In this document: positions 15,701-61,635 of the stretch, piece after piece
How the letters are laid out: the number at the start of each line of letters is the position of its first letter
Numbering within the stretch: the first letter of the stretch is position 1
Assembly (NCBI RefSeq): GCF_964194025.1
Contig: NC_134472.1
Location: 67,518,001-67,582,000 of the forward strand
Direction of reading: 5' to 3'
DNA length: 64,000 bases
Source of the DNA: Convolutriloba macropyga
Lineage: Eukaryota
Position numbers and translations under genes: made by a program
The notes under the pieces: generated by a model
What the model was told of the DNA's origin: nothing
Databases searched by the model: none
Seen by the model: only the letters and a program-made list of their open reading frames with translations

Positions 15701-18700
15701 TTGAACGTAATTGCTTTAAGGAAATTTCTGTGATTTTTTGAACTTGTCAAATTTTTATATTATTTTAGTCAACCTTTTGCTTATTCTCAGTAAGTACAGG
15801 TCAACCTTTCCTCCATATAGAATAAAAAATTTTCTGGCCGATTGTTTTAACAGAAGGTTTTCTTGCTTTTGGTACTACGAGTTTTCACACAAAATTTTCT
15901 GATTTTTGTGCATAATTGCTCATTTTAGCTCTTGTTTTTGTTTCTTTTGAAATTGTCATAATATTTAACAGTCTAACGAAAAAAAGCTTTACAACATTTG
16001 AAACTGAACATAAATTTTGTTTTCATAACATATGGTTTGACGGGCTGCGACACCGTTCTGTTGCAGAAATTTGTAGTTTTTTTTTGCCGTTTTATTTGTT
16101 AATTTTTGCCAAATATTGTGTAATAAAAGGTCTCAGTGGCCAACTATAGATAAACAAGTGAACATAAATAGCTAATGGTTGTTTTGACTTTCAAACTAAA
16201 TTTCTAAAAAAAGAGTAATGGTATTCTTCAACTTATAACTTTTTGTTCTGGTTTGCGTTTTTTTTTCGTATTTTACGATGATGTATCATTTTCGTAAATT
16301 AGCCTCATTACTTAGAGCACTTTTTATTGTTTTGTTGAATCAAATAATAATTTTTCTGTTATTTAAACTTTTTAAATGATGTCTTGAGAGCTTAGACATT
16401 TTGTTTCAGAAGAATTTTGTGAAGTTTAGACAATTTTCAGTTTTTTGGTTCTTTTTGTTGTCATTTTGTGATAGTCGTTTTACAAAAAGATGTTATGATG
16501 ATCAAAGGAGACGAAAATGAAGATGCTATATTCTCGCGGTGAATATTTTATAAATTTAATGGCTTCAAAACTGTGGTTTCGTAAAGTTGTTTTTGAAAGT
16601 TATTAGTTCAGCTCGTATTTAATGTTATTTTATAGTCTTATAATTTAGTCTCATTAATAACAGTCGCAATTAGTTTTCCGAGTAGTTGGAAGAGAAACTG
16701 TCTACTCTTTTAGTCGAAAGCTTTTGTTGGCTATGAATTTTTAAAATATTTGTTTTTAATAAAAAAAAGATAGATTTTTGAGATCTGCCAATTTTTGTTT
16801 CTGTTAAATTGTAGGTAAGCATCTCTATTTACAATTCACATCATTCATCTTTTGTAATACAAATTGCTCCTCATAACGGTTTTATTTTCTTCAAATGCTC
16901 TTTTTTTCTTGGAACAACCAGTTTTCATAAAACCAATTTTCGTGATTTTTGCAAATGTGCCCCTTTTTTGTAGGTTTTTGTTTTCTTTTCAGTATCACAA
17001 TAATGGGCGTCATTTGATTTACAAATTTTGTTACCTTCTAAAAATGCAAACGAAGGTTTTTATTGTTTTTAGTGATCTCTATCGAGGTATAAAATACTCT
17101 CTCAACTCAAAGATTTCATTTATTGCGTAATGTTTCTAATCAGTTCGAATTTAAATCTTTTTAAAAAAAGCATTGTTTTAATAAATTTTGCCGCTTTTGC
17201 TCATTTCTAGTCGACTTGTTGCCAAGTTGCCTTGAAGAAAAGTCCCATATTTTGTTCCCAAAATTGCCGGTTAATCTTCCGAGTTTTAATTTTATCTGAT
17301 GCCATTTTGATTTGGTTATTAGTGGTTTTCAAAAAATGGACAAGGAATTTTGGTCGTAATATTAATATTTGTAACTATTTGATTTTTATTGACGTCTTTT
17401 CTGGTAGCCATATTATGGTAGCCACAGGTCTCATAGGCCCTCTAGAGTAGATTATTTTTTTAGTAGTTTGTTGAACGATATGTTGATATGTTAATTTTTT
17501 TATCTCTTCCTCATTTGTTAGACAATTAAGTGAAAAATGTGATGAGCGGGGTCGGAACTTAATATGCGAACGCACATTACCGAGCCGCCTTGTCGTAGTA
17601 AAGTTTCAAAATTAAAAGTTCAAAATTTAGTTTTTTGTGTTTGTTAATATAAGCGTGTGAAGTATAACTTTAACGCAGCGAAGTACGGCTGTTTAGGGTA
17701 AATTGCTAGAGAAATTTTTCTACTTAGTAAAGTTGCAACAAGACGAATCAATATATAGTATTTTATTATACCTTTCAATCCAAGCTGGCATTTTTTTCTT
17801 GTTTAACTTGAAATAAGATTTGGATTGTTCGTCTTGAGCAAATGGTCAGGAATTCCAGAGAAATTAGCACATTAAGCCTTAATAATGTAGTCTCAAAATC
17901 AATTGCTTTGAATACTTCTGCTGCTCTTATAATTTTTGACAAAGAAGGTTTGAGTTGGCTACTGTAATGCTTTTATAATTGGTATCTTTCAAGCTATGAG
18001 TAGTTATTTACTTCAGTCGAAACTAGAGTTCTATCCAAACTATCATATAATTAGTTTTCTGTCCAGTCAGCGAGCATGCATGAAAAGATTTGAACATCCG
18101 AAAAAATGTTTCATGCATTTTTTCAAACGCATGCTTTTTTGCTTGAACTTGCGCTTACAGACAGCTTTTTGCACAAAGTTTAATGATCGTATATCGGACC
18201 ACTGCAATTTTCTTTGACATAGCAGGCTATTACTGGAGACTTGATGAGACCATGACTATAGGCCATAGAATTAGACAATCCAAGATGACGGTTGCGTAAG
18301 AGCAGTCAAAAAGTCGATTGATTTCAATTTTGTTTTCGACATTAATTACAGCAATTACAGCTTGGTTAATTACAGTAATGCGCATAAGCTACTTGAAAAC
18401 AATTTACTATTATATATTATTGGATAGTGTTAATTGTTTTTCAAAGTGACAGTTACCGTCGTTTTATCGGACAGTTTTGCTATATTGAGTGGAAAATTTG
18501 CAAATGTCTGTAAATTAATCTTATGAAAAAGGCCAAAATTTAATATTAATTTGTAATTATGTACAGGTTCGAAGTGTGCTGACAAAGGTGGGACTTGAAT
18601 CGTGTAAGCACACTCGCATTGGTGGTGAACTGTTTCGTGGACTGTCAACGGGGCAGAAAAGGAGACTCAGTATTGCCCTGGAGCTGTTGAAGGAACCTTG

Positions 18701-21700
18701 GATTCTGTTTCTGGATGAGCCACTGTCTGGTCTGGATGGCGCAGCTGCTGCAAATATTATGAAGATTCTGACTAATTTGGCTGATTCGGGTTTGTTTCTC
18801 TTCTCAAAATTTTCCAAGTTTTTCAGATTGTTCATTGGAAACGATGGCCTGTGTATACCGATGATTCGTTATAGAAAAGTTTTTAGAATTGGCTAAAACT
18901 GTAGTGATTGACTTAACAGAAAAGATAAGAACTAGTGGGATTTGGTTTTAAATAGCCACATAGCGATAGCTGGGGCGATTATTGGCCTTCTCTTGGTTTT
19001 TTACAATTCAAAGAATTTGAATTGTATTGGGGGCGCTGTCTTTTTTTAACGATCTCTTCACAGATTTTCATGATTTTTGAAGTCAAATTGGAGCAGTGAT
19101 TTGGGTCACGCCGAAACAGGAAGTGAAGCGAAAAAGCGAGTGGTTTTGCAGCGTGAATTTTTTTGCTCTATTTTTAAAGTAGAGTGAGAAAACATTGTTT
19201 CAACAAAAATTCGCTTTCTCGCTAGTGGTTTTTTTGTTCACATGCGGCAATTTCACTTTGATTTTTACTGTTTTTTTTCGATTTTTTGGATCGGATTTTT
19301 TTCTAAATGGTTTTCCTCATTCCATTCATAATTCATTCTAGGTCTCCTTTTTTGTTTGAACTAAATGTCCATTTCTCGCTAGTGTTGTTTTTTGTTCACA
19401 TGCGGCCTTTTGACATTGATTTTTTTATCTGATTTTTATGGAAATGTTTTTCCCAATTCATTACTAGTCCGTTCTAGGTCTGGTTTTTTGTTTTGTCAAT
19501 GAAAATTCTTCGAATTGTACCTCAGGACTTGCCCTGCTATCCTATATATTAAACGCGTGAGCTCTAAAATGGGACAAAATTTTTGCATGTTTAAGTTGCC
19601 TCTCGAAGCGCATGATTAAGAACCGCATTGAGCAGCATGGTTAAGCGAACATATCGAGAGGTCAATGACCTAAAAGGCTCGAGGAAGATGGGTGAGAACC
19701 GAACCTGGGATAAAAGACTGTTAGTCAGGTGCAGTTACCACGAGGCTAAGAGGGCTTGAAAGTATGCTCGCCCAGAGGAAGGATTTACAGTCCTGGGTAC
19801 TACGTGTTTTTTTATGCTCGCGAAGTAAATTTGATTAAGAACCGCATTGAGCAGCATAGTTAAGCGAACATATCGAGAGAGGTCAATGACCTAAAAGGCT
19901 CAAAGAAGATGGGTGAGAACCGAACCTGGGATAAAAGGCTAAGAGGGCTTGAAAGTATGCTCGCCCAGAGGGAGGATTTACAGTCCTGGCTGCTACGTGT
20001 TTTTTAATGCTCGCGAATAAGTTTGATTAAGAACCGCATTGAGCAGCATGGTTAAGCAAACATATTGAAAGAGGTCAATGACCTAAAAGGCTCAAAGAAG
20101 ATGGGTGAGAATAAAAGACTATTAGTCAGGTGCAGTTACCACGAGGCTAAGAGGGCTTGAAAGTATGATCGCCCAAAGGTAGGATTTACAGTCCTGGGTA
20201 CTACGTGTTTTTTAATGCTCGCGAAGTAAGTTTGAAGTTCTTATTGTATACGTGTTTTTTTGCAAATATTTACTTCCACAGATTCTGCGCTATTCTAGAA
20301 CACTCTTAGCTTTCAACTAAGTTTTTCACGCTTAACTTTTTGACTTTTGTATGATCCCAATTCTTCTCAATTGGACAAAATTTTTGCATGTTTAAGTTGC
20401 CTCTCGAAGCGCATGATTAAGAACCGCATTGAGCAGCATGGTTAAGCGAACATATCGAGAGAGGTCAATGACCTAAAAGGCTCAAAGAAGATGGGTGAGA
20501 ACCGAACCTGGGATAAAAGGCTAAGAGGGCTTGAAAGTATGCTCGCCCAGAGGGAGGATTTACAGTCCTGGGTACTACGTGTTTTTTAATGCTCGCGAAG
20601 TAAGTTTGATTAAGAACCGCATTGAGCAGCATGGTTAAGCGAACATATCGAGAGAGGTCAATGACCTAAAAGGCTCAAAGAAGATGGGTGAGAACTGAAC
20701 CTGGGATAAAAGACTGTTAGTCAGGTGCAGTTACCACGAGGCTAAGAGGGCTTGAAAGTATGCTCGCCCAAAGGGAGGATTTACAGTCCTCGGTACTACG
20801 TGTTTTTTAATGCTCGCGAAGTAAGTTTGAAGTTCTTATTGTAAACGTGTTTTTTTTTGCAAAATTTTACTTTCACAGATTCTGCGCTATTCTAGAACAC
20901 TCTTAGCTTTCAACTAAGTTTTTCACGCTTAACTTTTTGACTTTTGTGTGATCTCAATTGTTCTCAATGTGAAATATGTTTTTTTGCACGTTGTTTAATG
21001 TGTTTTTTTAAATTTGGTTCTGACAGCTCAGAAGTGAAGTTCATTACATCCTGTTTGTTACACATAAATCTGGATGTCAGTATTTGTGTCTTTTCCAGGG
21101 AAAACCGTGGTCTTCTCAGTTCACCAGCCCCCTTCTCGAGTGTGGAACACTTTCTCTTCCCTGACTCTGTTGAGTGGGGGTCTGTTACTATATGCTGGCC
21201 CAGTGGGGGAGGCAATCCCCATGCTCACCACTGCTTCTGGACAGGGAATCCCTGAAAACTGCAATCCGGCTGATTACATGTTGGATCTGGTCAACAACGA
21301 CTTCAAGGGTGAGCACGCAGTAAATTTTCTTGATTTAGAGCTTGTTAAATGAGATGAAGATATAATATTGCGTTGTATACCTCCTCACCGACACAAAACC
21401 TGTACGGTGAAAGTTTATTATAGCTGCGAAGCTGTAAGCTGAGCGTAGCTATATTGCGGTGCTCTTGGTTTTTTTTGTTTCGTCTTCTGACGCTCTTTTT
21501 TTACGACTCGAAGAGGAGTATTGGTTTTCTTAAGGTTTTTTACGACTCGAAGAGGAGTATTGGTTTTCTTAAGGTTTTTTTTTTTACCGGAAGTACTATT
21601 CGTTCAGACGATGTTTTGACCTAAAAGCGAAAGCGAGTAAAATTGCAGTGTGAACTAATTTTTTCTGAGCGAGAGAAGTTTTTTGATCATGCGCTGCGTT

Positions 21701-24700
21701 TAGTGAATGACTTTTTGACATTGAAAAGCAGTTTTTGACTAAATGGCACATATAGATAACCGTTTTTAGACGTTTTTTCGTCTAAGCGGCCTAGTTTTTT
21801 TGCGTGTAATTTGGTTTTTTGTAGAAATAATTTTTAATCGATGCTATGTTGAGATGTAAACCCCGGAAATTGATAGCACAGTATTTTGCGTAGCCTGAAA
21901 TTGCGTTTCAAATGCAAAATTGGCACATATTTCTTGATTTTTTAGTTAATTTTTGGCTTTTTTTCTATTAATTTCTTCATTTTTGGATCTTTTAGCTGTT
22001 TTTTGTCAAAAATCAGTTAATATGGCAATTTCCCTTTGATAATTCATATACTCAATGCCTCTTTCTACCTCGATGTAATTTTGTTTCATAAAATTGTACA
22101 TTTGCGAATCCGATTTTCGTAGTTTTTTGCAATTTTTTTCAGTTTTTTGTTTGTATTTTGCTTTTAATTACTAGAAATAGTATTTTGGGGAACATGAGGG
22201 ACTTTAATTTCGTTTCAATAAAAATTCAATCAGTTTTTGGTGTTAAGTGAAAAAACAGATAAATTTTTTTCATAAATGCAGTCTTAAATATTTTGCAAAA
22301 TGTTTCATTGTTTCGTATGTCTGAATTTTGCTTTTTCTTGTTTTATTCTGTTCAGTAAGTTGGATTTTTGTCTCGAATGACTCGTTGTCTTTTCTATGTC
22401 TGGAATGCTGATCAATGAAATGTACTCGTTTTTCTTGATTTTTTTAAATTTGATTTTTAACTTTCAAAAATCAAGAATTGGTCTTTTTGTTACGGTGTTC
22501 CTAACATTGTGTACATATTCTTCACATTCTCGTTTGTATCATTCTAGTTTTGTCCTGGCACCTACTTTTGTATTCGTTATATTGATTTTTTCAGTTGTTA
22601 AAAATTGAATGAATTCAGCTTTTTCTTAGATCTTGGTTTCTTCGGTTTTCAATTGATTTAATTCAAAATAAGGCAGTACTGGGAGTTTGCTAGAAAGTCT
22701 TTTCCAACATTTCGACTTATTACTATTTATTGCAAATTTATTCCGGGCTTGGTATTATTTTTAGACGATTGTTTGCCTTTGAATATTATTCTGTTGCTTT
22801 TGTTTTTCTATGATTAATTTAATTTTTGAATTAGTATGAAATCATGTTGTCTAGCATATATACAACAAGGAAGAATCATGTATTTTTTGTCTTAATCGCC
22901 GTGATTAGAAGTCTAATTGTAGTGGTTCTCCGATTCTTAAGTTTGAGCACTCTTTTTTGAATAATTTTGACTTTCCTGTCTTTTTTGGAAAGTTTTTATC
23001 TGCCGTTTGCTTTCGCGATCTTTTTGAGATTAGAATCATTAATTATCTGAGGGCAATTGATGGCCCTGTCAGCTTTGTCAGGCTATCAGTTTTTTGACCA
23101 TCCTAAAAATTTCAGACTTTTTTAACGTTACCAAACGTTTTCAATAATAAAATTTTGCTGCCTTTTCTTTCTCTTGGTGACAGTGGTTTAAATTTCAGCG
23201 ATTTTTAGATCAGACCCGCGGAGGTAATGAGTTAATGGTTTAATACAAAAGGTAATGGTTTCAGCTTTTGGTGAAGTTTTGGTGCTTCGAGTCGCTTCCG
23301 GAATTCTCCCGGCTATGCGAAAGTTTTTAGGTTATTTGCGTGATTAGATTTTGATCACAAGTGACTTAGCTCACTCAATAAAATGACTTTTGCACTTTAA
23401 AACTTAAGTTTAATTTGAATTTGTTTAAGGTCAAAGGAACTCGTATGTGCAGTAAAGGTCCCTAATAAGAGGCTTCTGCGGAATGAATTTTAGCAAGCTT
23501 TATTAATTTATCGCTAAATTTTTTTACCTAGTTTTTTGAGCGGCGTCGATGTTTTTTTTTCAATTTAGATCTGTATCTGTTTCTATCTCTATTATATGGC
23601 ATGCAGGTCTATTCTTTCGCAGCTATTCCGGCAATCTGCCGGCTATGTTATGATTTTTGCAAACTAAATTTGACTATTTGTTTAAGATTTTGTCGAAAAA
23701 ATGTTTATTTAGCTTTCAAAATGCTTCTCAAATTCTTACAAACTCGAATTTACGGTGTGGTCTTTCAGGTCACGTAAAAATTGACAAATTGAACGACGTG
23801 TATCTTAGCTCACAGCTACATCGAGACATCTTCGACACCATTAAGTTCGAGCGGGAGCGAGCTCTGATCTTTCTTGCTGACAACCCGGAGTACTTAAAAG
23901 ACAACAGAAGACGAAGGTTCCGTGCTGGCTTCCATACCCAGATACGATACCTGACCAGTCGTGCTCTGTGGAACAACATCCTTCATCCTGGATTGTACTG
24001 GTCCAGAATTGTCATCTACATTCTGTTAGACTTGGTCATTGCTTCGATGTTCACTCGATCGATTGATATTAAGGACGAATACAAAGCTGGAATGATCTTC
24101 TTCGTACAGTCTTATCTTGTTATCATGACTGTTGCTGCTCTGCCCTATCTGATCTTGGCTCGACCTGTGTTTTGTAAAGAACGCGCGAATGGCTTGGTAT
24201 CTGTGACGCCGTACGTGCTTTCGACATTGATAGCGATGATTCCGGGTGTTATGTTGGCTACTTTGATCTCGGCTTTGCTCATATTCGTAATTACGGGACT
24301 AGAAAGTTTTGGTTGGTTCTTCTACATATTATTCTGCACATTACTCTGTGCTGAGTCAATTATGAACTTGGTAGCTTCATTGACGAATCAATTCATTGTG
24401 GGTTTGGCGATCGGAGCTGGTATTTACGGAATTTTTATGATAAACGCTGGGTTCCTACTCCCAAGTCATGCGATTCCTGAGGAATGGTTCACGGGTTGGC
24501 GAGTGTTTCATCATGTTGCGTTTCATAAATATTCGCTTAGATCTCTTATGCACAATGAGTTTAGTCATCCCAAATACTTCATCAATGATACGTTGCACTG
24601 CGGCGGTCAGGCACTTCCTGGAGATTTGGTTCCGGACGTTAACGGATCCGGATCTGTTGGCGATGCCCATCGGTTCACGACACAACATCCAAGTTTCGGT

Positions 24701-24892
24701 CATGCCTCTTTACCGCGACATGATCAAAACGAATCTGCTGTGAGTGTTCCGAGGTGTTCGCCGATTCTGGAGCGTTACAAATGGCAAGACGAAAGCCCAC
24801 TTTCGGATACTTTCTTCATCTTACTATACACAGCTCTTATCCAAATGGTTCTGTTGATGGTCACGTATTTCAAGCATACGGGAAGACGATAG
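755..24892 (+). CDS. ABCG (White-type, NBD-TMD) half ABC transporter, 9 coding exons: 755-781, 6828-6902, 8008-8242, 8709-8870, 13119-13264, 13873-14007, 18567-18789, 21099-21308, 23769-24892 (2337 nt, about 778 aa)
   Basis: All exons are bounded by AG/GT and the phases chain (0,0,1,1,0,0,1,1) into one open frame. Walker [10 protein letters not shown], signature LSTGQ, Walker B ILFLDE, D-loop SGLD, H-loop SVHQP, ABCG motif NPADY and a C-terminal multi-TM domain with ERANG. Exons 1-3 rest only on splice-site and phase consistency. Confidence 0.9.
1390..5037. mobile_element. Two old family A HINE-like remnants in inverted orientation, 3' ends pointing outward
   Basis: 1390-1440 is the reverse complement of the family A 3' end seen at 4990-5037. 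Internal GGCTTCGACA-type subrepeats are on the - strand in the left half and the + strand in the right half. Confidence 0.55.
5095..6010. repeat. ~490-bp tandem duplication
   Basis: 5095-5520 is repeated almost exactly at 5586-6010. Confidence 0.95.
6021..6480 (+). mobile_element. HINE-like element, family B (short copy)
   Basis: 5' tagctgcaaagctgtaagctgagcgtagctat; 3' gctgctat plus a degenerate stem-loop ending ccggctatg. Confidence 0.6.
6828..6902 (+). CDS. ABCG putative exon 2 ([25 protein letters not shown])
   Basis: ttttcag acceptor, CAG|gtaatt donor, 75 nt open, GC-richer than the flanks. Confidence 0.6.
8008..8242 (+). CDS. ABCG putative exon 3 (low-complexity N-terminal region)
   Basis: tttaag acceptor, CAG|gtcagc donor; phase 1 joins exon 4 as a G|GT Gly codon. 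Confidence 0.65.
8709..8870 (+). CDS. ABCG exon 4 (start of NBD: [10 protein letters not shown]...KVLLQSITG)
   Basis: Typical ABCG NBD lead-in; acag acceptor and gtcagt donor. Confidence 0.85.
9786..11032 (-). mobile_element. Internally deleted BEL/Pao element in ABCG intron 4
   Basis: 3' LTR 9786-10132 (TGTTAT...ATAACA); 85 bp of the 5' LTR at 10948-11032 (one mismatch); PBS TGGCGC at about 10942; leader fused directly to the integrase C-terminus WERLI...LNSRPL...PLTPNHFL...WPLGRV...RPV. Confidence 0.88.
13119..13264 (+). CDS. ABCG exon 5 (Walker A)
   Basis: [19 protein letters not shown]; gtag acceptor and gtgaga donor. Confidence 0.93.
13873..14007 (+). CDS. ABCG exon 6 (Q-loop region)
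   Basis: [24 protein letters not shown] aligns with the ABCG YVxQDD...TVxET pattern. Confidence 0.9.
14627..17593 (+). mobile_element. Helentron/HINE-like non-autonomous element, family A
   Basis: Sub-terminal inverted repeat GTTCCGACCCC (14627) / GGGGTCGGAAC (17548), a 5' CCCCAC-GTGGGG hairpin, a 3' hairpin, T-rich flanks and degenerate internal subrepeats. The ends recur at 50057, 60057, 36017, 4990 and 1390. Confidence 0.65.
18567..18789 (+). CDS. ABCG exon 7 (signature, Walker B, D-loop)
   Basis: [18 protein letters not shown]...[12 protein letters not shown]. Confidence 0.93.
18952..19539 (+). mobile_element. HINE-like element, family B2, truncated by a Helitron-like insertion
   Basis: Homologous to the first ~600 bp of 38923 and 41346. 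Confidence 0.7.
19540..20968 (+). repeat. Helitron-like insertion carrying a nested tandem array of ~190-220-bp units
   Basis: Begins A|TCCTATATATTAAACGCG exactly where the host repeat reads GCTA|TG. Five units start at 19614, 19833, 20025, 20415 and 20608, in two higher-order blocks. No CTRR 3' end was found. Confidence 0.75.
21099..21308 (+). CDS. ABCG exon 8 (H-loop, NPAD motif)
   Basis: [10 protein letters not shown]...[11 protein letters not shown]; ttccag acceptor and gtgagc donor. Confidence 0.93.
21420..23648 (+). mobile_element. HINE-like element, family B, filling most of ABCG intron 8
   Basis: subTIR ATAGCTGCG ... CGCAGCTAT followed by the stem-loop CCGGCA-atc-TGCCGG. Confidence 0.7.
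23769..24892 (+). CDS. ABCG exon 9 (ABC2-type transmembrane domain)
   Basis: ctttcag acceptor; multiple hydrophobic helices, FCKERANG motif, TAG stop. Confidence 0.93.
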
Positions 24893-25275
24893 ACCCAATG
24901 ATCAAATGTGTTTTGCGGACATATTTTTTAATAGTAAAGAATATTTGCATATCGATATGTAGTATATCTATAGCATAGTTACATAACCTTGAAACAAATG
25001 TTTTCGTAGTTCTCCTTTAATTTGATGAAGTTAATTGACAATATGTCTTCAATGTTTAAAATTTAAACTTAAAGCCATTTTTTATGCACGTCCATTTAAT
25101 TCAGCTTGATTTCATTGCAAGCTAACTATCTAACCCCTTTTTTCGATAAATCAGAAGTCAGAAAGTTTTACGATTTGGAGCTGAGTTATATGAAGTTTTT
25201 CAGAACTTTGATTTGGTGCTGAAACGCGCTTTTTGTTTGAATTTTTGTCAACTCTTTGAATCGAAGTCTTGAAAA

Positions 25276-25692
25276 ATGGCCAGAACTAAGCAGACAGCTA
25301 GAAAGACCACAGGTGGTAAAGCTCCCAGAAAGACTCTGGCTACAAAAGCAGCGAGAAAGATGGCCCCTTTGGGTATGCACGGAGGAATTAAGAAACCCCA
25401 CAGATACAGGCCAGGAACCGTAGCTTTGAGAGAGATCAGAAAGTACCAAAAAAGCACGGAGCTGTTGATCCGAAAGCTCCCATTTCAAAGATTGGTCAGA
25501 GAGATTGCTCAGAATTACAAGCCGGATTTGAAGTTTCAAAGCCAGGCAATTTTTGCATTGCAAGAAGCGGCAGAGAGTTATATGGTGAGCTTGTTCGAAG
25601 ATACGAATTTGTGTGCCATTCACGCCAAGAGAGTTACCATTATGGTGAGAGATTTGCAACTTGCTAGAAGAATCCGAGGTCATCAACATTGA
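25276..25692 (+). CDS. H3: Divergent histone H3 variant, intronless, 138 aa
   Basis: ARTKQTARK...[16 protein letters not shown]...[18 protein letters not shown] is unmistakably H3. About 20 substitutions and a 2-aa insertion versus canonical H3; ORF intact. Confidence 0.95.
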
Positions 25693-27981
25693 GGTTCACA
25701 ACAATCCAAGTTGAGCTCAGAGACTGTCAGATTAGTGCAGGTCTTAGTTAAGAAGGACTAAGCTATGAAGGACTAGCTTTTAGATCCAGAGAGATGTACT
25801 TTACAAATCTGAGATTTATATTTATAAATGGGCTATGAGTTATAAATGAGGCTTGGAAATACTGCTTTGGTTAAAGAGATCATATAGGAGAGTTTTGTTG
25901 ATAATTAAAAAATTTAAATTGTGGTTTTATTAATTGCCCTCGAACGAAGATAAGCAATTATTGTAAACGTGAGTCTTTTAAAGTGCACAATTTTTGCTTG
26001 AACGTTTTTGCGCTTTTCTCCTAAAACATTTTTTAAACTTCTTGAGTGTCTTTTTCACGCTGAGTTCCTAATTTTTTAGTGAACGAAGTTGCTCTCTTTC
26101 TGAAATTAAGTTTGTTGGTAAGATAAAAGCCATTGTGAGCTTTAAAGAGAAGACACCATTGTAACTCAATGATTAAGATGTTGGACTGGTATCCTGTTCT
26201 GGAGGTCCTCTTTTTTGATGAAACAAGAGATCGTTAACATTGGCTTAGCGTCTGTGATAGCTAAATTCTCTATGGCTAGCTTGTTTCTAATGTTACTCGA
26301 AGAAACAAATGTGGATTAGAGCTCAAAAATGCTCACATGTCTAGGCTTATTAGCCTCGAAAATATTAACCCACTAAACTGAATACTTAAATTTAATTTAA
26401 ATGAAAGTTAGAAATGTATAAAAAATGAAAGGACTGTTGTAGCTTCGCTAATTTTTTCAGTTTTTGTATGAATAAAAACATTCATCAATCAGTGGATCCA
26501 TGAAAACTTTTTACCCCATAGCTAAGAAAGATGCTTGACGAATAGATTGTTGGAAAGTACTCAATGTTTTACCGAACAGTATTGGAGAAAAATGAATAAT
26601 ATGACGAACAAAAATTGCTAAGTTTTTTTTTGAAGTTTGCCATAAAGTGTTATTCCATCTCAGCTTTCCTTAATGTACAGTGAGATATGATATGTCTTAT
26701 CAATAAAACAAAAATTAGGCAAAACTGTAGAAGCCACAAAATGCGGCGACACTGACCTAATTTAATTATCTTTCCAATACTCAAATTTTAACCTTCACTG
26801 ATTGTTTTCATTCAATTTTGACCGACTGATATTTTGGCGCAAACATGCAAAATTGTACCATTGATGACCTCATCGAAAACTAAGTCGGTCTTTTAAAGAG
26901 ACTTTTCAAATTTTTCTTGATTCTCTAGGAGAAATTGAGGCTTATTGATTTGTTTTATATTATTGATCTTTTGAGATGAAATCATTCTAAAAGAACATGA
27001 TTTCTGAACATCCGTTTTCTGAAAAAAATATTCTAGAGTATTTTTGAAAAAGAAAAAAATGGTTGACCAATTGCCTTTGACTTTAACACTCTTTTCTACA
27101 ATTTTTTTGTTTCGCTCGTAATTATTGCTATTTTTGGCCTTCTTTTCCCTAGATTTGCAACTTGAAAGTCTTATGGATTTGCAATTTAGAATTCGTATAT
27201 TAATTTTGAGTGTTTAAACTGATAGCTAATGTATTTTAGGACTTTTACATTTGGTTTCATAAAATGTTCGCGAAATTTTAGTTTGGTCCGTAGTTGTGGC
27301 CCTTTTGTTGTTCTAGCTGGCCCGTTATTCATTTCTCTTGTTGGGGCTTAATAGTGACAGGTTTATAACTGCTTAATAGTGACTTTCTAATGAGTCATAT
27401 GTATATCCGTTTAAGTGTTTCAGTTGAAAAGTTTTTAAAAAACTATACCTAAAAATTTTTGACTTTGATACTAGTTTTTGTCATTAATTTTTAATGAAGT
27501 TAGAGTTTGCAGTAATTGCTGTTTTTGTTGTTTTTCGCATAGTAACATTAATTAATTTAGAGGTCTCAAATCGTAGCAGGACACAAGAAATTTTTATGAG
27601 GTTCTTACTTTTATTTTTCATTTTTATACTAATTGAAAGTCAGTGGTCTGTTGATTTTGCCCGTGTCTGTGTTCTTTTTTTCTGTTCACTTAGCCACACT
27701 ATTGACGGATATCGTCTGTTGAGATTGTCTAATTACAATTAAGCGACTCTTTTTATAGCTTCAGCTGACTACAAGAGAAAAAAATTGTGATAAAAGTGTG
27801 AAAAAAATTGCGAAACGTTTTACATAAGTCACAATTTTCCCGTTTGACTTCTGACTTACTTCACTCACTGTTGCAACTGAATTGATTTTAAATTCTGTCA
27901 AGCATTGAATTACGCAATGTGGTGAATAATGTCAAAGTCAAAAGAGCAAAATCAAAGAGTCGGGATAAACCGATAGAGCCC

Positions 27982-28230
27982 TGTCATTAAGTCGTTGAGA
28001 ATTAGGTTATTGTTGCGGTGCAACATTAATTGAATCACTTGCTTAGAAATGCTTTATTATAACGCTTTATGCTTAAGAATCTCAAGCTCGAAAAGAACAA
28101 GTGAATGTGATAATATCGTTTGAAATTATGAATATTTGGTTTCAGCACGTGGTTAATTATCATTGTTTTCCTCATCTTGCTCGGATTGCATTGAAGGTCA
28201 TTGTATCAAAGGCTATTGTAAATCGTAACA
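27982..28230 (-). repeat. BEL 3' LTR (about 249 bp; distal boundary approximate)
   Basis: On the minus strand the PPT CAAGGAGGCCGGTA is followed by TGTTACG at 28230, there is an internal AATAAA, and a plausible ...ATGACA end at 27982. A 37-bp piece recurs at 34274-34310. Confidence 0.7.
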
Positions 28231-28397
28231 TACCGGCCTCCTTGAACTGGTTCAACTTTATTAATATATTATTGAAACTGGCTTTCTGGTTAAGTGGTCA
28301 ATTGCGTTAAATAGTTTTTTCAGCAACCCATCACAAGTTTATTGATACTTTCTTAAATTCAATCAGTTCTTGTTTGTCAGTTTTGTACAGTTGTAAT

Positions 28398-29699
28398 TTA
28401 CATTTCCTTGATGTCATTCCTCGTCTGCATCCTCTGTTGTTCATTCTCATCTGTGTCATCTTCCTTGTCAGATCTTAATGGCGGCATGTCATTATCGTTT
28501 TTCATTAACAAGACAAGCTTGTTGACTGGCCGTATAAATAGTCCAGATGATGTCTTCAATTCAACAACTCGAACTATTTTATCATTTCCATCAAAGACCT
28601 TTGTTATTCGTCCCATTGGCCACAGAGTGGGTGGCGTGTTCTCTTCCTTGATTATTACTACATCATTGATGTCAATATTTGTTTGTCCCGTTTGCCATTT
28701 TTTCCGTTATTGTAAATTTGACAAATATTCTGCTGACCACTTCTTCCAAAAGTCCCTGATAAGATGTTCCATCCTCTTCTTCTGTCGTGTCAGGGAAATT
28801 GTTTCTTTTCCTGTTGTTTTTGGTTCAGGCAATTCTGTGATTGGTCGTCCTATTAAAAAGTGTCCTGGTGTAAGTGCTAAGGCATCATTGGGATCATTTG
28901 AAACGGAGGTAATAGGCCGTGAATTTAAGATTGCTTCAATTTGTGCCAACAGTGTTGTGAAGTCTTCAAAAAACAGTTTTGTTTTTCCAATGCTGCGGTA
29001 CATGTGGCGTTTCAAGGATTTGACAGCGGCCTCCCATAGTCCTCCAAAATTTGGTGTTCTCGGCGGAATAACAAGCCAAGTAATATTGTTCTTGCCGAAT
29101 GTTGATATCAAAGCTTCGAACTCGTGAGTAGCTAAGGCTTGTCGAAACTCTCACTCTCCCTTGGTCCCAATGAAAGTTGTTGAGTTGTCGCTGTATATTT
29201 CGTCAGGAATACCTCGACGAGATACAAATCGTTTAATGGCTGCAAGACAGTCGTCCTTGGTCAGAGACATAACTGGCTCTATGTGAACTGCCTTCGTACT
29301 GAAGCAAATGAAAATTGCAATGTATGTTTTCAAAAGCGTTCGAGTTCCAGTTTTTGTGTAGAACGGTCCACAATAGTCGAGTCCGCAGTGACTGAACGCA
29401 AATGACGGCACTACTCGTTCTCGAGGTAGATCTCCCATCTGAGGCTGTAACAATTTGGCATCAAATCGGATACATGGCTTGCATCTGTATAAGACACCCT
29501 TCACTACAGAAAGCCCTCCAGGTATCCAAATAGTTCGTCGAAGCGTGTATAACGTCAATTGTGGTCCGCCGTGAAGATTTTTTTCGTGTGCTTCTCGAAA
29601 AAGCATTTCAGTGATCGGTGATTTTCTTGGAATAAGAACTGGAAATTTTCGGTCTATTGTGTAAGGTGAATTGGCTAGGCGTCCCCCAACTCGAATCAC
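28398..29699 (-). pseudogene. BEL/Pao integrase in three broken pieces
   Basis: HHCC, DDE core and C-terminal GRITKVF...VRVVELKT...RPVNKL. Confidence 0.9.
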
Positions 29700-29899
29700 T
29701 TTATTTTCTTCATCAAAAAATGTTGAAAGGCTGTTGAGACTGCTGCTTCTAGGAAATTTTTGTCTTCTATGTCTCCCCTTAGTGGCTGCTCCATAGGCGT
29801 TAACAAAACATTTTTTTCTCTGGTTTCGTCTTTGTTGAATTGATGTACTGTTTCGCTAGAATTGCCTGTATTCCCGGTAGACAGCATGTACAGTTGATC

Positions 29900-30450
29900 C
29901 CCAGGGCCCCCGGCCCAATCTATACCATGGCTGACATCATCCTTTGAGACCCCGACACCATCTACGCTGACAAGACATCCTGGGCCCCCGGCCCTACCTA
30001 TACCCAAGGAATTCGTAGATACTGAGCTCGCATTTTCACATGCGCCCCCGGCGCTGACATTACTAACTGGGTCTCGGCCCTACCTGTACCTAAGGAATTG
30101 GCAGAGGAAACTGAGCGCGCATTTTCACGTACGCCCTCGGTGCTGACAAGACTACCTGGGCCCCCGGCCCTACCTGTACCTAAGGAATTGGCAGTAGAAA
30201 CTGAGCTCGCATTTTCACCTGCGCCCCCGGCGCTGACATGACTACCTGGGCCCCGGCCCTACCTGTACCTAAGGAATTGGCAGCGGAAACTGAGCTCGCA
30301 TTTTCACCTGCGCCCCCGGCGCTGACATGACTACCTGGACCCCCGGCCGTACCTATACCTAAGGAATTGGCAGTAGAAACTGAGCTCGCATTTTCACCTG
30401 CGCCCCCGGTGCTGACAAGACTACCTGGGCCCCCGGCCCTACATATACCA
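29900..30450. repeat. GC-rich ~90-bp tandem repeat (about 5 units plus a degenerate one) inside BEL pol
   Basis: Unit cccccggccctacctgtacctaaggaattggcagtagaaactgagctcgcattttcacctgcgcccccggcgctgacatgactacctggg. Confidence 0.95.
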
Positions 30451-30458
30451 CCAAACCC

Positions 30459-32792
30459 CTATGGTCCAGTGAATTTGTTACCTTGCTGAATGTCTTGTTG
30501 TGTCGCATCTCTGCTGCTGTTGCTTGCATCGTCAGTGGGCTGATTCCTGATGATCTTGTATTCATGAAGAAAGTTTCGCTGTATGAAGCTGTACAGTTGA
30601 AGTCTTCCTTCGTATAAATCTTTCCCTTGTAAGGAGACTGAATTATAAGTCCGGATCATGGGTTGAGACGTAGACTCATTCCTATCAGTCGTTTCCTTTG
30701 GCGTTGAAGAGCATGCTTTTAAGCGTTCCGACATTTTTGTTGTCCGGTGTTTCACTTTTGAAGATTGAATTCTTCTCTTAATACTGCTGATGAACCTTTG
30801 GACATACGTAAACATCCTTTTAACTTTGTGTATTGAGGAATGCCGATTTATCATCAATAAAGTTGCGTTATCTAATTTTGATGAAATCATTGTCACGTTT
30901 TCAGATTGTACTTTTACTTCTTTTTCGGTCTCTTCTCCTGCAAGTGACAAAATGTCAAGTGAAGGCCAGGCGTTTTCAGGTTGCCGCAACCACTCTGGTC
31001 CATTCCAACAAAGCTTATGGTCCAATAAATCAGCTGCTGCTAATCCTCTTGAAGCACAATCCGCTGGATTATCTTCTGTTGGAACATGTTTCCAACTACC
31101 AGCTGGAATAATTTCTTGTATTTTCGCTACTCGGTTGGCGACAAATGTTTTCCATTTCCTCTGATAATCTCGCAGCCAGGCAATTGTAACCGTAGAATCT
31201 GACCACGCAAAAACCTTCGGAGTTGGAAACCGTTCATTGCTAATAGCATTTGTCACTGCCTCAACAAGCTTAGCTCCTAGCAGGGCAGCACAAAGTTCCA
31301 ACCTTGGCACACAAACTGATTTAATTGGTGCAACTCTCGTCTTTGCTGTAAGCATTTTTGTTTCAATGAAATTGTCTGTCTCCTGTCTGATGAAAACGAC
31401 AGCAGCATAAGCTGTAGTAGAAGCGTCGCAAAAGACGTGCAACTGCAAATCTGATTTTGTGGCTGGCTTGAGAACCGTTGAAGACTTAATTTTTTCAAGA
31501 TCCTTCAGTTGTGCTCGAAGTCGCAGGTACTGCTGTACAATTGGGTCTGATAAAGGTTGATCCCAGCTAAGTTTGTCCATCCACAACAGTTGAACAAAGG
31601 ATTTATGTTGAATAGTCGTTGGTGATAGCCATCCGAGTGGGTCAAATAAACGTGAAACTTCTGAGAGGATTTGCCGTTTAGTAAACGGAGCTCCCTTGTC
31701 AAGTTTTACTGTGAAACCAAATTGATCAGGATTTGGATTCCACCTTATCCCAAGCGTCTTAATGGCATAGTCTTCGCTTTCAATTATCTTCTCGTCTTCC
31801 GTTTCTCTGAAAGTGGCAGCTAGTCTTGATACAAGTTTTGAGTCGCTAGATACCCATTTCCTTATATCAAAACCTGCTGAAGCAAGAAGCGTAATAATGG
31901 CGTCCTGGAGCTTCTCTGCAGCTTTCGAATCTTCGCATCCTGTAAGTAGATCATCCACATACATATCAGTTGTTAGTGACAAACGAAGTTTATTGTTTGT
32001 TGTTTCTTCGGCAAGAACTTGCAGTGGTCGAATTGAATGAAAAGACGAAGAAGCAATGCCGTTTGTTACCCGAGTCATACGAAAGGTTTCAATCGCCTCT
32101 GAATTTGGATCTTTCCACAATAATCGGTGATAATCTTTGTCTTCTTTGTCCAATTCCACTTGCCTGTACATTTTTGCAATATCAGCAGAATGTGCTACTT
32201 GGTGTAGTCGAAATCGAACAAGAATGCTGAAAAGGTCTTTCAGAATTTTTGGTCCAACCATGAATCTGTCGTTAAGAGATATTCCTGTTGTTGTTTTTGC
32301 GGATCCGTCGAAAACGACCCTCAGCTTGGTGGTAGTGCTTGACTCCTTGAACACACAATGATGACAAAGATAGTAGCAGTTTTCAACAGGCTTGACAAGT
32401 TCTGATGTTGGAACTTTCTCCATGTGTTTGAGATGAAAGAACTCTCCAATGAATTCTGCGTATCTCTTATAAAGGTCGGGTTGTCTCTCCAGTCTGAATA
32501 GAAGACTGTGGAGTCGTTTTCGGGCTTGTTGAAGTGAATCTCCCAATGCTTTTGTCTCGTTCTTGAAGGGAAGTTTCACTGTGAAGCGACCTTCAGGGCT
32601 TCTTCTAGTTGTTTCCTTGAAGTGATCATCGCAGCGTTTTTCTTCGGCTGTCCAAAGCTGCGCTGCTGGAACTTCTTCTATTTCCCAAAAACGCTGCAAA
32701 TTTTCTGGCTCTGAAGAAACAAAGAAAGTCTGTAGATCGTTTGTATAGGTTTTGTCTGTCTGTTCCCTTCCAATAACGACCCAACCGAACAT
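30459..32792 (-). pseudogene. pol: BEL/Pao pol, RT-RNase H segment
   Basis: 777-aa ORF with Pao-type RT and RNase H motifs, flanked by stops. Confidence 0.92.
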
Positions 32793-32810
32793 TGATAGCC
32801 TATATGTTAT

Positions 32811-34297
32811 TCAACAGTTAGGCTCCTTTAGTCGATTTTTGCCAATCATTATATCTTCATAATGGGATGCTCCGATCAAGAGGTCAATTGATGACGGCTT
32901 GTTGAAGTCTGGGTCAGCAAGCTCCAACTCCTTTACTGTTTCCCATTGGCTGGTGTCAATGAACCGTGATGGCAGATTATCAGTCATTTTTGTCAAAATT
33001 GACGCACTAATTTTGACAGTGGACAATCTGTTCCTTGATGAGATAAGAAGATCCACGCGACCTTTGTTGTCTTGAACCGTCCCACCTAGTCCAAAAACTT
33101 TTGTGTTGCTGCTTTTCTTCTTCAATTGTAACCTTTGTACTGCTGATTCAGTTATGAGGTTGTTTTGTGAAGCTGAGTCTAGAAGTGCCCTAAGTAAAAT
33201 TGTCTCGTCGTGAACATTAACGGAAACAATTGCGGTTTGAAGAAAGACTTCTTCTGAAGTGCGTTGAGTCATAGCTCCTGTGAATTTGTTTTCATCCTTA
33301 GATTTTGCAATTGCTGTTGTTGTTATAGCGTTGTTCTTCTGTTTGTCATTTGCTTGAGTGCTGGTTGTTCCGCTAGTTGTTTGCTGATCGGTGTTTCTGT
33401 TGTGAATGTTTTCATGATGAAGAAGAGTATGATGCTTTCTACTAATTACTTGCATTTCGATCCATCACAATTTTCTGATCTGTGTCCCGGTCGCAGACAA
33501 TTGAAACAGAGTTTTCAAACCTTTATCAGCTCTGCACGTTCCCTTACTGAAAGGTTCTTGAACTTTCCGCATTTAAAAATTTTGTGCGTTTCTTCACAAC
33601 ATTCGCATTGTTGCTCGGAAGTCGCCAAATGTGTGTGCAAATGTCGTTGGTTCCCTTTCATTTGAGTTTTTGTCGCTCCTACTCCATTTGGCGCTGTTGC
33701 CTCGAGTGCTTGTGCGCGTTCCTCTAAGAAAAGTCTGAGCTCTGCATACCTTTGAGGTTCCTTGCCTTTTGAAGACAGCTCCCATTGTTTTCTTGTCTCT
33801 GTAGGCAGCTTCTCACTGATCAAGTAAACAAAAAAGACGTCTTGACTGTTGACTGATTCTCCCAAATTCTGCAAGGCAAGTCGATGTTCGTCCATTGCTT
33901 CATTTAAATTTCTTAAGTCTCTGGCATTATCGGTTGTCAGTGATCGATACGAAACAATTGAATGCAGGTGTGTGCGAATGATGATCCTCTTGTTCTCTTA
34001 TCTGTTTATCAGAGTATTCATAGCAATGTCGAAGTTGTGATCGGTAACTGGTATCGAGGCAAGCAGTTTGGCGGCATCACCTTTTACAGATGCTTTCAGA
34101 TACTGCAACTTCTGACTTCCTTGAAGAGAACTGTTGTCGATGACTGCTCCTTTAAACAAATCAAAGAACGAAGTCCATTCCATATAATTACCCGAAAAAA
34201 CTGGCAGATTGAGTTTTGGTAACTTGATGTTGGCTGAGTTCCTCATAGCATCGGAGATGCTATGTTGGCTTAGTTCCTCATCTTGCTCGGATTGCAT
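32811..34297 (-). pseudogene. BEL/Pao gag-protease fragments
   Basis: Gag core motif, zinc knuckles CECCEETH..C and CFNCLRPGH, HHTLLH, protease LRALLDSASQ. Confidence 0.88.
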
Positions 34298-59200: not shown

Positions 59201-61635
59201 ATCAATGAGAGGTCACATCCAATTTCTTGTATTCCAAAAAATAGCATATCTACTGATATTTTTTGTCACCCATGCTTTGTTTGTTGGTCAATAAACGTTT
59301 TTTGAGTGGTCATTTTGCGCTTCTTTTTCTCTTCTTTCAGAACAATCTCGTAACAGATCCCAATGGTTTACAAATGTGGCCCAAATAAACTTATCTCATC
59401 TCTCAATATAATTCTCCTGCAGCTAAATTAGTAGATATAAGAATTGAATTAAAAATACATAATTTTCAGATAATAGCTAATGATTTCAATAGTAGCAATA
59501 GTTTGTGTTTTCGCAAATCGTTTCTACTTTTTAAGGTTTTTCTTTAGTTCGTTTCTAAGGCTTAAACTACACAAAGACATCTCTTTTGTGTTTTGTAGTA
59601 ACTTTTTTGGTAATTTATCATGGATTTTTTAGTTGAAAGCTTCTGAACTTTCTTTTAAATACTTGAAATTTCTTGGTTTAAAAAATGTTGATTAATTTTT
59701 GAATTTCGCCTCATTGATCGTAACATAGTCCCATTAAGAAAACGTTCCGTCCGCTGTATAGTTAGGACAAATTAAATTTGAGTAGTTAAAGTTTTATCTG
59801 ACTGCATTTTGCATTTTGACGTTGTTACTATGTGCTTTTAAATTTAGATATTCAGTTTTTGCCATGAAGTTTTTGTTTTTGGTATTTTTTCGTAGTCTCT
59901 TTAGGGTCAGATCTCAGTGGCGCTGTAAAAAGGCATGGCATTATGTAATTCAATTAGTAGATAGGTAACGATATGTAACGATTGTTTGAAACTCAAGCAT
60001 CTATTTTTGTTATTTCTTCATTTGGTTGACAATTAAGTCAAAAATGTAGATGAGCTCGGGTCGGAACATCATGTGCGAACGCACATTAACAAGCCGCCTT
60101 GTTGAAGTTTTAGATTAATCCTTTTGATGTCAGTTCTCAGTAGAGTTTTCAAGAGGAAAGCCAATGCTTTGATAGTTGCTGTATCGTAGATTGATTGTTT
60201 AGTTCGATGGAAAAATAATGTCTGTCTGTGTGATCTAAATTGTATTATACTCCAATTGAAAATTTTATACTCCAATTGAAAATCAAGGAAGATCACGTTG
60301 TATCTGTTGGTTTTAATTAGGGCTCTATTAGTGAACAGATATCATTATATTGTTTTGTCTATGAGAAGCAAAGATTACACGTGAAATTAAAAGCACTAAA
60401 TTTAGATAAGCATATATTTTATATTTGTCTAAGTGGATAATTTTGCAGCTGTAGCTGTGCACAGCCGTCTGTCGACATGATGTTTTTGATTTCAAACCAG
60501 TGGATATAAATTTTACGGGAAACTTTAAACTCTTAAAACGGCAAAATGCCTTTAACGGCGCCTCCTGTTAAGAAGTAAAACTCAATCTCACCATTTTTGT
60601 TCAGTTTATCAATTTCATCGGTTTGGTTCACTTCACTTCCTAAAGTATTTTGTTTGCAGGTCACCAGAGTATCTTGCAATTAATGACGAAGCTATCGCTT
60701 GTGCGAGACGTCTCTTTAATGTTCCGAACAACTACAAAGTTTTCTTCATGTCCGGTGGAGGCACTGGTCAATTCTCAGCTGTTCCTCTCAATTTACTGGG
60801 CGAAGGCAAAACGGCTGATTATGTTGTAACTGGCACCTGGTCCGATAAGGCCATGAAAGAGGCCAAAAAGTATGGAACTGTGAACAATGTCCACCCTTTG
60901 TCAAAGTTCACTTCAGTTCCAGACGAAAGTCTTTGGTCCAGGACTAAGGACGCCAGTTATCTTTACTACTGTGATAATGAAACGGTCCATGGTGTAGAAT
61001 TCCCCTTCATTCCGAGTAACGAGGGTGATTTCGCCAATGTTCCAGTTGTTGCTGATATGAGCTCCAACTTCGGAACTCGACTTTTTGATATAAACAGATT
61101 TGGCGCTGTGTACGCGGCGGTCCAGAAAAATCTAGGACCCGCCGGATGCACGGTGGTAATTGCACGTGAGGATCTCTTAGGAAAAGCGCACAAGTTTTGT
61201 CCCCAAATTTTGGATTATGACCAGATTGCGAAAGGTAATTCGGTGATGAACACCCCAGTTACCTTCAGCGTTTATATGACTAAGTTGGTCATGGAGTGGG
61301 TGGAACATAACGGAGGTTTGGAGCAGATGGAGAAAGATTCCCATATCAAGTCCACGATGCTGTATAATATCATTGACAACTCGGACGGTTTCTACACCTC
61401 GGTGGTCGACAAGTCTTACAGGTCCAGGTGCAATGTTGTGTTCAGACTCAAAGGCGGTGATACAGACTTGGAATCGGCGTTTGTGTCTGCGGCTAAGAAG
61501 AGTAATCTGTTGTCACTGAAAGGTCACCGAAGTGTGGGAGGAATTAGGGCATCAATTTATAATGCGATATCGACTCCAATGGTGGAGAAATTGGCAGAGT
61601 TTATGAAGGACTTCCAAGCTAATCACAGCACTTGA
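41112..61635 (+). CDS. PSAT1: Phosphoserine aminotransferase, 2 exons (41112-41293, 60660-61635), about 385 aa
   Basis: [16 protein letters not shown]|S split in phase 2 (AG|gttggc ... ttgcag|G), [28 protein letters not shown] lysine in [25 protein letters not shown]. Confidence 0.96.
41346..42300 (+). mobile_element. HINE-like element, family B2, just inside the PSAT1 intron
   Basis: Homologous over its length to 38923-39982, with the same termini. Confidence 0.72.
42491..42560 (+). other. tRNA-derived (SINE-head-like) fragment
   Basis: A-box-like TTTAGTGG and B box GGTTCGAACCC at tRNA spacing, but no complete cloverleaf. Confidence 0.4.
43447..43702 (-). repeat. Gypsy 3' LTR
   Basis: Identical by eye to 48997-49252; preceded on the minus strand by the PPT AGGAGGGGGAGATA (43703-43716). 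Confidence 0.97.
44360..47735 (-). pseudogene. pol: Gypsy pol (protease, RT, RNase H, integrase, C-terminal PHD finger) with a 1-bp frameshift near 46865
   Basis: Protease IADTGS; [28 protein letters not shown]; RNase H TTDAS, ELLAI, FTDHKP; integrase HHCC, HLDIVG/TDRGSQF/GQIERFH, APYSGPH; then a C4HC3 finger. Confidence 0.93.
44420..44554 (-). other. ING-type PHD finger at the integrase C-terminus
   Basis: [45 protein letters not shown] has C4HC3 spacing with the ING hallmarks YCLC, M-x-x-C, WFH-x-x-CVGL and PKGxW. Confidence 0.9.
47724..48803 (-). pseudogene. gag: Gypsy gag with a Gly-rich N-terminus and a premature TAG at 47961-47963
   Basis: [28 protein letters not shown] capsid-like motif. 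The same frame continues past the TAG into [19 protein letters not shown] (Cys/His motif) and ends TCA AAC TAG at 47724, overlapping pol in the -1 frame. Confidence 0.85.
48987..48995 (-). promoter_or_regulatory. Gypsy primer-binding site TGGTGACCC (likely tRNA-Trp)
   Basis: Lies one nt inside the 5' LTR and is complementary to the GGGTCACCA 3' end typical of tRNA-Trp. Confidence 0.7.
48997..49252 (-). repeat. Gypsy 5' LTR
   Basis: Identical by eye to 43447-43702; followed on the minus strand by the PBS. Confidence 0.97.
49666..58272. repeat. Tandem array of four ~2.2-kb units (starts 49666, 51673, 53899, 56114)
   Basis: Near-identical long units; the same short spurious ORFs recur with this period; unit 1 has a ~220-bp deletion near 50912. 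Confidence 0.97.
50057..60102 (+). mobile_element. Family A HINE-like element whose 5' part is tandemly amplified
   Basis: 5' end gttccgaccccacttgtgggg repeated in each 2.2-kb unit; a single 3' end gggtcggaac-ATGTGCGaaCGCACAT-taACAAGccgcCTTGT at 60057-60102. Confidence 0.65.
58424..58630. repeat. ~102-bp exact tandem duplication
   Basis: actaataattcccattggtttagggaagacg...cttctggc occurs twice head-to-tail. Confidence 0.9.
60660..61635 (+). CDS. PSAT1: PSAT1 exon 2
   Basis: Acceptor tttgcag; open frame to TGA containing all remaining SerC motifs. Confidence 0.96.

Follow-up and report, generated by a model that had tools for sequence, protein, structure and literature searches.

A probable lineage-specific histone H3 variant family in convolutid acoels, with methionine beside K27 and a rebuilt K27–K36 segment

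Few animal proteins evolve as slowly as histone H3, and the ARKS motifs that surround its K9 and K27 have a central part in both heterochromatin and Polycomb regulation. What kind of histone, then, is encoded by a solitary gene of the acoel Convolutriloba macropyga in which both of these motifs are changed? We analyzed this gene within a 64-kb stretch of the genome, referred to here as the window, whose main features are listed in Table 1. On balance, we consider it likely that it is a functional single-copy gene for a lineage-specific H3 variant, and that it belongs to a small, dispersed family that originated before the genera Convolutriloba and Symsagittifera split, has at least two loci in each of their genomes and is kept under strong purifying selection.

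Table 1 Features of the window around the H3 variant gene (window coordinates).
Feature	Position	Strand	Remarks
ABCG-type transporter, last exon (upstream neighbor)	23657..24892	+	ABC2_membrane E 3.5e-28; a 778-aa gene model ends there
Upstream motif AGTTTTTCAG	25194..25203	+	73–82 nt before the ATG; resembles a 3' splice acceptor
H3 variant CDS, complete, intronless	25276..25692	+	ATG start, uninterrupted, 138 aa plus stop
ATTAAA, candidate poly(A) signal	25904..25909	+	first on the sense strand after the stop; 212 nt downstream
Aminotran_5 (class-V aminotransferase) ORF, synteny anchor	60748..61635	+	Pfam E 2e-27

The encoded protein matches the Pfam Histone profile (PF00125) with an E-value of 6.3e-43 over profile positions 2–122 of 122 and aligns colinearly with solved H3 chains (E 7e-70). 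Its full-length histone-fold domain and H3-type N-terminal tail place it in the histone H3 class. As references for a residue-by-residue alignment, H3.2 (P0018:105-240) and H3.3 (P0011:93-228) sequences were cut from proteins found by word search. The window protein is 81.2% identical to H3.2 and 81.9% identical to H3.3, which amounts to one residue more for H3.3, and it differs from H3.2 by 24 substitutions and an insertion. Changes in the tail comprise S10T, Q19T, S28M, V35I and the replacement of A31-T32 by L-G-M-H, which adds two residues; those in the core include R53K, D77N/F78Y/T80P (DFKT to NYKP, with K79 kept), R83K, P121V and K122R. Positions 87–90 read QAIF, and the C-terminus ends in GHQH, where the reference has GERA. 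An earlier, sequence-only reading of this DNA had listed many of these substitutions, and every one of them was found in the alignment, together with S96A, A98S, L100M, G102S and I124L, which were absent from that list. Its further statements that K4, K9, K14, K27 and K36 are retained and that the gene has no intron were also borne out, the latter by a single open reading frame running from start to stop codon. K18, K23 and R2/R8/R17/R26 are kept in the same way. C110, H113, L126 and I130, residues of the H3-H3' interface, are unchanged, and nearly all DNA-contacting arginines are presumably conserved as well.

Within the H3 class, comparison with the established types revealed a mixture of shared and missing features. 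H3.3 is otherwise almost invariant among animals. Like canonical animal H3.3 genes, the window gene is solitary, lies outside histone clusters, has no 3' stem-loop, encodes I89 and keeps the major tail lysines. Of the H3.3 signature, S31 with A87/I89/G90, however, I89 alone is present: position 31 lies within the L-G-M-H segment, position 87 is Q and position 90 is F. The protein further departs from H3.3 by S10T, Q19T, S28M, the two-residue insertion, T80P and K122R. With replication-coupled H3.1/H3.2 it shares the fold, the length class and 81% identity, whereas the stem-loop, the multi-copy core-histone cluster and the SAVM patch are all absent, and the substitutions and the insertion set it apart. 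An identity as CENP-A/cenH3 was ruled out, given the H3-like tail, a loop 1 without insertion and the 81% identity to H3.

The same type of protein occurs at several further loci. The exact window protein (P0121) is on record in assembly GCA_964194025.3, on chromosome OZ077303.1, and on two haplotigs, and its cluster at 90% identity has six members. A paralog, P0122 (RefSeq LOC142354511), resides on another chromosome of the same assembly, and Symsagittifera roscoffensis carries two copies, P0034 and P0123 (LOC134840294 and LOC134844782). Two additional sequences, P0124 and P0125, are one or two residues off P0123; P0124 is an allele of P0123, since it stands in the same place beside Drosha, and P0125 is probably another. 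The family also includes P0041, a relative on a 2-kb metagenome contig, and P0074 (L011:10001-10417) from another assembly, which has an extended C-terminus and lacks R8, G13, R69 and R116 as well as the two-residue insertion. Lying in a transposon-rich region, this copy is probably decaying or evolving fast. T19, M28, H32, I35, P80, K83, I89 and L124 are common to P0121, P0122, P0034, P0123/124/125, P0041 and P0074, while T10, the two-residue insertion, K53, Q87 and R122 are found in all members except P0074. Position 90 is F across the family, or L in P0123 and its alleles (QAIL). RefSeq already holds gene models of this family, named only ‘uncharacterized protein’, and we found no description of it in the literature.

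To look for the same combination of tail changes elsewhere, 5.8 billion proteins were searched by words, once with the whole length and once with the tail only; among the 120 best proteins listed each time, none outside the family had it. Individual changes, for example ARKT or ARKM, are present in scattered protist or environmental H3s. The lineage-restricted H3 variant that had been proposed from the letters alone is thus supported: among the best-listed proteins, the combination is confined to a family of convolutid acoels that is under purifying selection. The label ‘orphan’, given to the gene at the same time, holds for its solitary location, but not for its relationships, as at least two loci exist in each of two acoel genera, including paralogs and orthologs. 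Placing the gene in an H3 phylogeny with relatives had been suggested as a check. A small protein tree united the two S. roscoffensis copies, joined the window gene to P0041 and P0074, and placed the intron-bearing P0122 closest to canonical H3. Such a topology would fit two duplications, one of them old and the other, in Symsagittifera, more recent. As a side observation, two Logan contigs (L015:1245-1655 and L016:359-769) carry H3 genes with T10 or N28 and with AAIL or TAIL at positions 87–90; their neighbors are short intronless genes (ankyrin, NADAR, 2OG-Fe(II) oxygenase), which gives these contigs the look of a giant virus or a compact protist.

The genomic neighborhood links the window gene to one particular Symsagittifera locus. 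The Aminotran_5 ORF of the window shares 76% identity over 293 aa with the S. roscoffensis gene that immediately follows LOC134840294 on the same strand. Because the same aminotransferase gene lies downstream of both H3 genes, the window gene and LOC134840294 are positional orthologs. The distance from the H3 gene to the aminotransferase has grown from about 2–4 kb to 35 kb in C. macropyga through retrotransposon insertions, with Pao/BEL and Gypsy elements now standing between the two. Over the same species divergence, 8 of the 138 residues of the H3 variant have changed.

On the upstream side, the stop codon of the ABCG transporter precedes the H3 ATG by 384 bp on the same strand, and the + strand between this stop and the H3 gene contains neither AATAAA nor ATTAAA. 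Exons of the transporter at 13085–13429, 18576–18896 and 23657–24892 (+) encode its ABC_tran and ABC2_membrane domains. Within 10 kb of the H3 variant, gene calls comprise only this transporter and the Pao/BEL element. This LTR retrotransposon, at about 28400–34300 (−), includes reverse transcriptase, integrase, aspartic protease, DUF1759 and DUF5641 domains, and its ORF structure is unlike between the haplotigs L001 and L002; a separate DUF5641 remnant (10196–10930, −) lies inside the ABCG gene. High-copy repeats at 22600–23763, 25898–26091 and 27644–28400, with summed contig depths from hundreds up to about a million, border a unique 2.1-kb segment that holds the last ABCG exon and the H3 gene. 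A rearrangement between 23649 and about 25950, suggested by apparent joints, was rejected: the sides of these joints are 20–23 letters long, their end points are many and the DNA is AT-rich, as for chance matches at repeat flanks.

An intronless gene surrounded by transposons, with an intron-bearing paralog elsewhere in the genome, could also be a processed retrocopy of that paralog (P0122) that drifts neutrally and is still open by chance. The substitution pattern argues strongly against this. Among the window gene, P0122, P0034, P0123 and P0041, pS ranges from 0.72 to 0.94 and pN from 0.036 to 0.115 (Fisher p < 1e-35 for every pair), and the resulting pN/pS values of 0.04–0.13 include 0.05–0.09 for the window gene against its relatives and, among these, about 0.05 against both its paralog and its ortholog. 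Synonymous sites are saturated, and the family is under strong purifying selection. Furthermore, a single synonymous SNP (25626) separates the 417-bp CDS of the two C. macropyga haplotypes, which encode the same protein, while their 1.6-kb 3' flanks diverge by about 3%. With the reading frame intact on both haplotypes, an intact positional ortholog in another genus and no adjacent poly(A) tract, we regard a neutrally drifting retrocopy as extremely improbable. A dN/dS-type analysis had been named in the sequence-only reading as a way to recognize a neutral retro-pseudogene, and the values obtained here, together with the intact frames, point the opposite way. An ancient retroposition as the origin of the window gene, with selection acting since, is possible.

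A second question is whether the gene simply encodes the standard, replication-coupled bulk H3 of this taxon, as might be supposed from the occurrence of the same, highly conserved sequence type in two genera. Read depth over the H3 gene equals that of its unique flanks in three genomic runs (43–69x; 3x in a fourth, shallow run; 22600–28400 mapped), so the gene is single-copy; the even depth of all four mapped runs across intergenic DNA marks them as genomic rather than RNA. No other histone ORF was detected among the 20 ORFs of at least 95 aa that were scanned by domain in the window, which include all those clear of the two retroelements and of the H3 gene, in agreement with the earlier statement that neighboring histone genes are missing. 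For the histone 3' stem-loop, searches against Rfam returned no family at gathering score in the whole window and none at E 10 or better in 25600–26600, and the stem-loop was likewise not found by Rfam at five family loci. A consensus pattern scan and a separate hairpin scan of the 3' flanks yielded no stem-loop either, so that its absence, as first noted from the letters, was confirmed by three kinds of scan. Considering also that the type is represented by two known dispersed loci per genome, it is very improbable that the window gene is the bulk H3. The lack of a stem-loop and the solitary single-copy location would instead fit a replication-independent gene.

How, then, could such a gene be expressed? 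Since it lies outside histone clusters and has no 3' stem-loop, its transcript would be an ordinary mRNA, probably polyadenylated and possibly trans-spliced. The ATTAAA downstream of the stop is a weak candidate for a poly(A) signal, because this motif is not enriched in this AT-rich DNA. At the 5' side, the window gene, its paralog P0122 and P0041 share the identical 10-mer AGTTTTTCAG, placed 50–90 nt before the ATG; on the contigs of the latter two, it lies at L004 ~9913-9924 and L012 ~922-934, and 11–12 nt are identical in pairs. The other three copies of the family show T-rich look-alikes, and apart from this motif nothing alignable was found in the family flanks. The 10-mer occurs 3 times in the 64-kb window, counting both strands. 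Judged by its resemblance and position, it may represent a spliced-leader acceptor, the acceptor of an intron in the 5' UTR, or a start-site element. In S. roscoffensis, 30% of the genes receive a spliced leader by trans-splicing (PMC9911081), and a spliced or trans-spliced 5' end of the H3 variant mRNA appears a reasonable guess. In a run from 2016 of the same organism (X5), 88% of the CDS words are present; its contigs total 159 Mb compared to a genome of 1.18 Gb, which suggests a transcriptome, although the automatic classification is DNA.

The solitary, dispersed loci, none of them with a stem-loop, raise a further alternative, namely that this family is the convolutid H3.3 itself, which diverged, duplicated and took over the role while the canonical form with S31 and AAIG was lost. 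I89 is the H3.3 state, the window protein shares one more residue with H3.3 than with H3.2, and the coding sequence of the paralog P0122 is interrupted by an intron in the same region as in H3.3 genes. The intron itself, however, does not coincide. In P0122, a single GT-AG intron follows CDS nt 139, in phase 1 within the codon equivalent to Gly44, whereas the coding exons of a fish H3.3 locus (L017; 128+154+129 nt), the one vertebrate gene used for this comparison, are separated by introns after nt 128 (phase 2, Arg42) and nt 282. As the P0122 intron is offset by 5 nt from the first of these H3.3 introns and the second is missing from P0122, intron position does not tie the family to H3.3, and descent with a shared intron was not supported against this fish gene. 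The H3.3-like gene setting is thus present, outside replication-type clusters and with no 3' stem-loop, but the conserved coding introns of H3.3 were found neither in the intronless window gene nor, at their positions, in P0122. In addition, both of the defining residues S31 and G90 are gone.

Hofstenia represents a distant acoel lineage and offers an informative comparison here. In Hofstenia miamia, four H3.3-type genes have been described, and in two of these, H3.3 and H3.3-2, the AAIG motif has become AAIL (Hulett et al. 2023, PMC10163032). These AAIL genes are enriched in an apparently unspecialized subset of neoblasts, and RNAi of one of them blocks regeneration (PMC10163032). An expanded H3.3-type family with altered 87–90 motifs in another acoel is in line with a diverged H3.3 in convolutids, but Hofstenia retains a canonical AAIG H3.3 copy alongside its AAIL paralogs (PMC10163032). 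Taking the residues, the intron and this coexistence together, we think it unlikely that the present family is a diverged H3.3. The resemblance to the AAIL paralogs themselves is twofold. In both cases, G90 gave way to a bulky hydrophobic residue (AAIL in Hofstenia, QAIF in the window protein and QAIL in P0123), and the paralogs have nearly identical proteins encoded by very different nucleotide sequences (PMC10163032). They differ at position 87, which is A there and Q here, as judged by the published description of the motif. Two proteins considered as possible Hofstenia sequences, P0168 (T10, N28, AAIL) and P0155, were rejected, since they lie on compact contigs that are crowded with intronless genes and resemble viral or protist DNA more than that of an acoel.

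Taxon-restricted H3 paralogs are known from elsewhere, for example mammalian H3.4/H3t, H3.5 and H3mm, primate H3.Y/H3.X and plant H3.15. Such variants carry few changes at modification or chaperone sites and are often limited to particular tissues or states. Compared by general description, the acoel family is of the same kind, with a different set of changes and an independent origin.

If the lineage-specific H3 variant is the correct reading, what could its altered residues do? Pairing with H4 and entry into nucleosomes appear most likely, because the histone fold is intact and none of the classical tail lysines is lost. In other systems, ARKT motifs serve as substrates and readouts, and T10 would retain a phosphorylatable residue next to K9, so that the K9-adjacent switch is probably kept. 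The earlier statement that both ARKS sites are altered therefore stands for the residues, S10T and S28M, but only one of the two switches is abolished. The loss of the phospho-acceptor at S28, in turn, follows directly from S28M, and M28 would abolish phosphorylation beside K27. The phospho-sites S31 and T32 are replaced by hydrophobic and histidine residues plus two extra ones, which would remove them as acceptors, and K36 thereby stands two residues further from K27 but retains the local context GG-I-KKPH. As a result, K27 and its surroundings may be read or written differently. In the core, P80 in place of T80 would eliminate phosphorylation at this position, and R122, present in all members but P0074, could not be acetylated, while presumably preserving the charge at the dyad.

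A second group of changes concerns the route of deposition. G90 of H3.3 is the residue read by HIRA/UBN1 and DAXX. In all family members but P0074, Q-A-I-F/L replaces the chaperone-specificity patch at positions 87–90, and the bulky F90 is closer to M90 of replication-coupled H3 than to G90 of H3.3. Deposition of the variant may follow a different route from that of bulk S-phase assembly, and its nucleosomes might mark some part of the chromatin or some cell type, being refractory to phosphorylation at S28, S31 and T80 and to acetylation at K122.

By analogy with Hofstenia, one could go further and view the family as the convolutid counterpart of the AAIL paralogs, that is, as a histone of stem-cell or germline chromatin that might even have replaced canonical H3.3. 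We consider this extension doubtful. If it is true, M28, the missing S31/T32 and R122 would yield nucleosomes that respond neither to the K27-S28 phospho-switch nor to acetylation of K122.

Altogether, K27 is kept in this family, while M28 has been fixed since before two acoel genera split, the spacer between K27 and K36 has been rebuilt and the chaperone patch has been changed. The family therefore represents a natural experiment on the purpose of those residues. Acoels are regeneration models, and if the H3 variants are expressed in neoblasts or in the germline, they would provide a testable handle on stem-cell chromatin.
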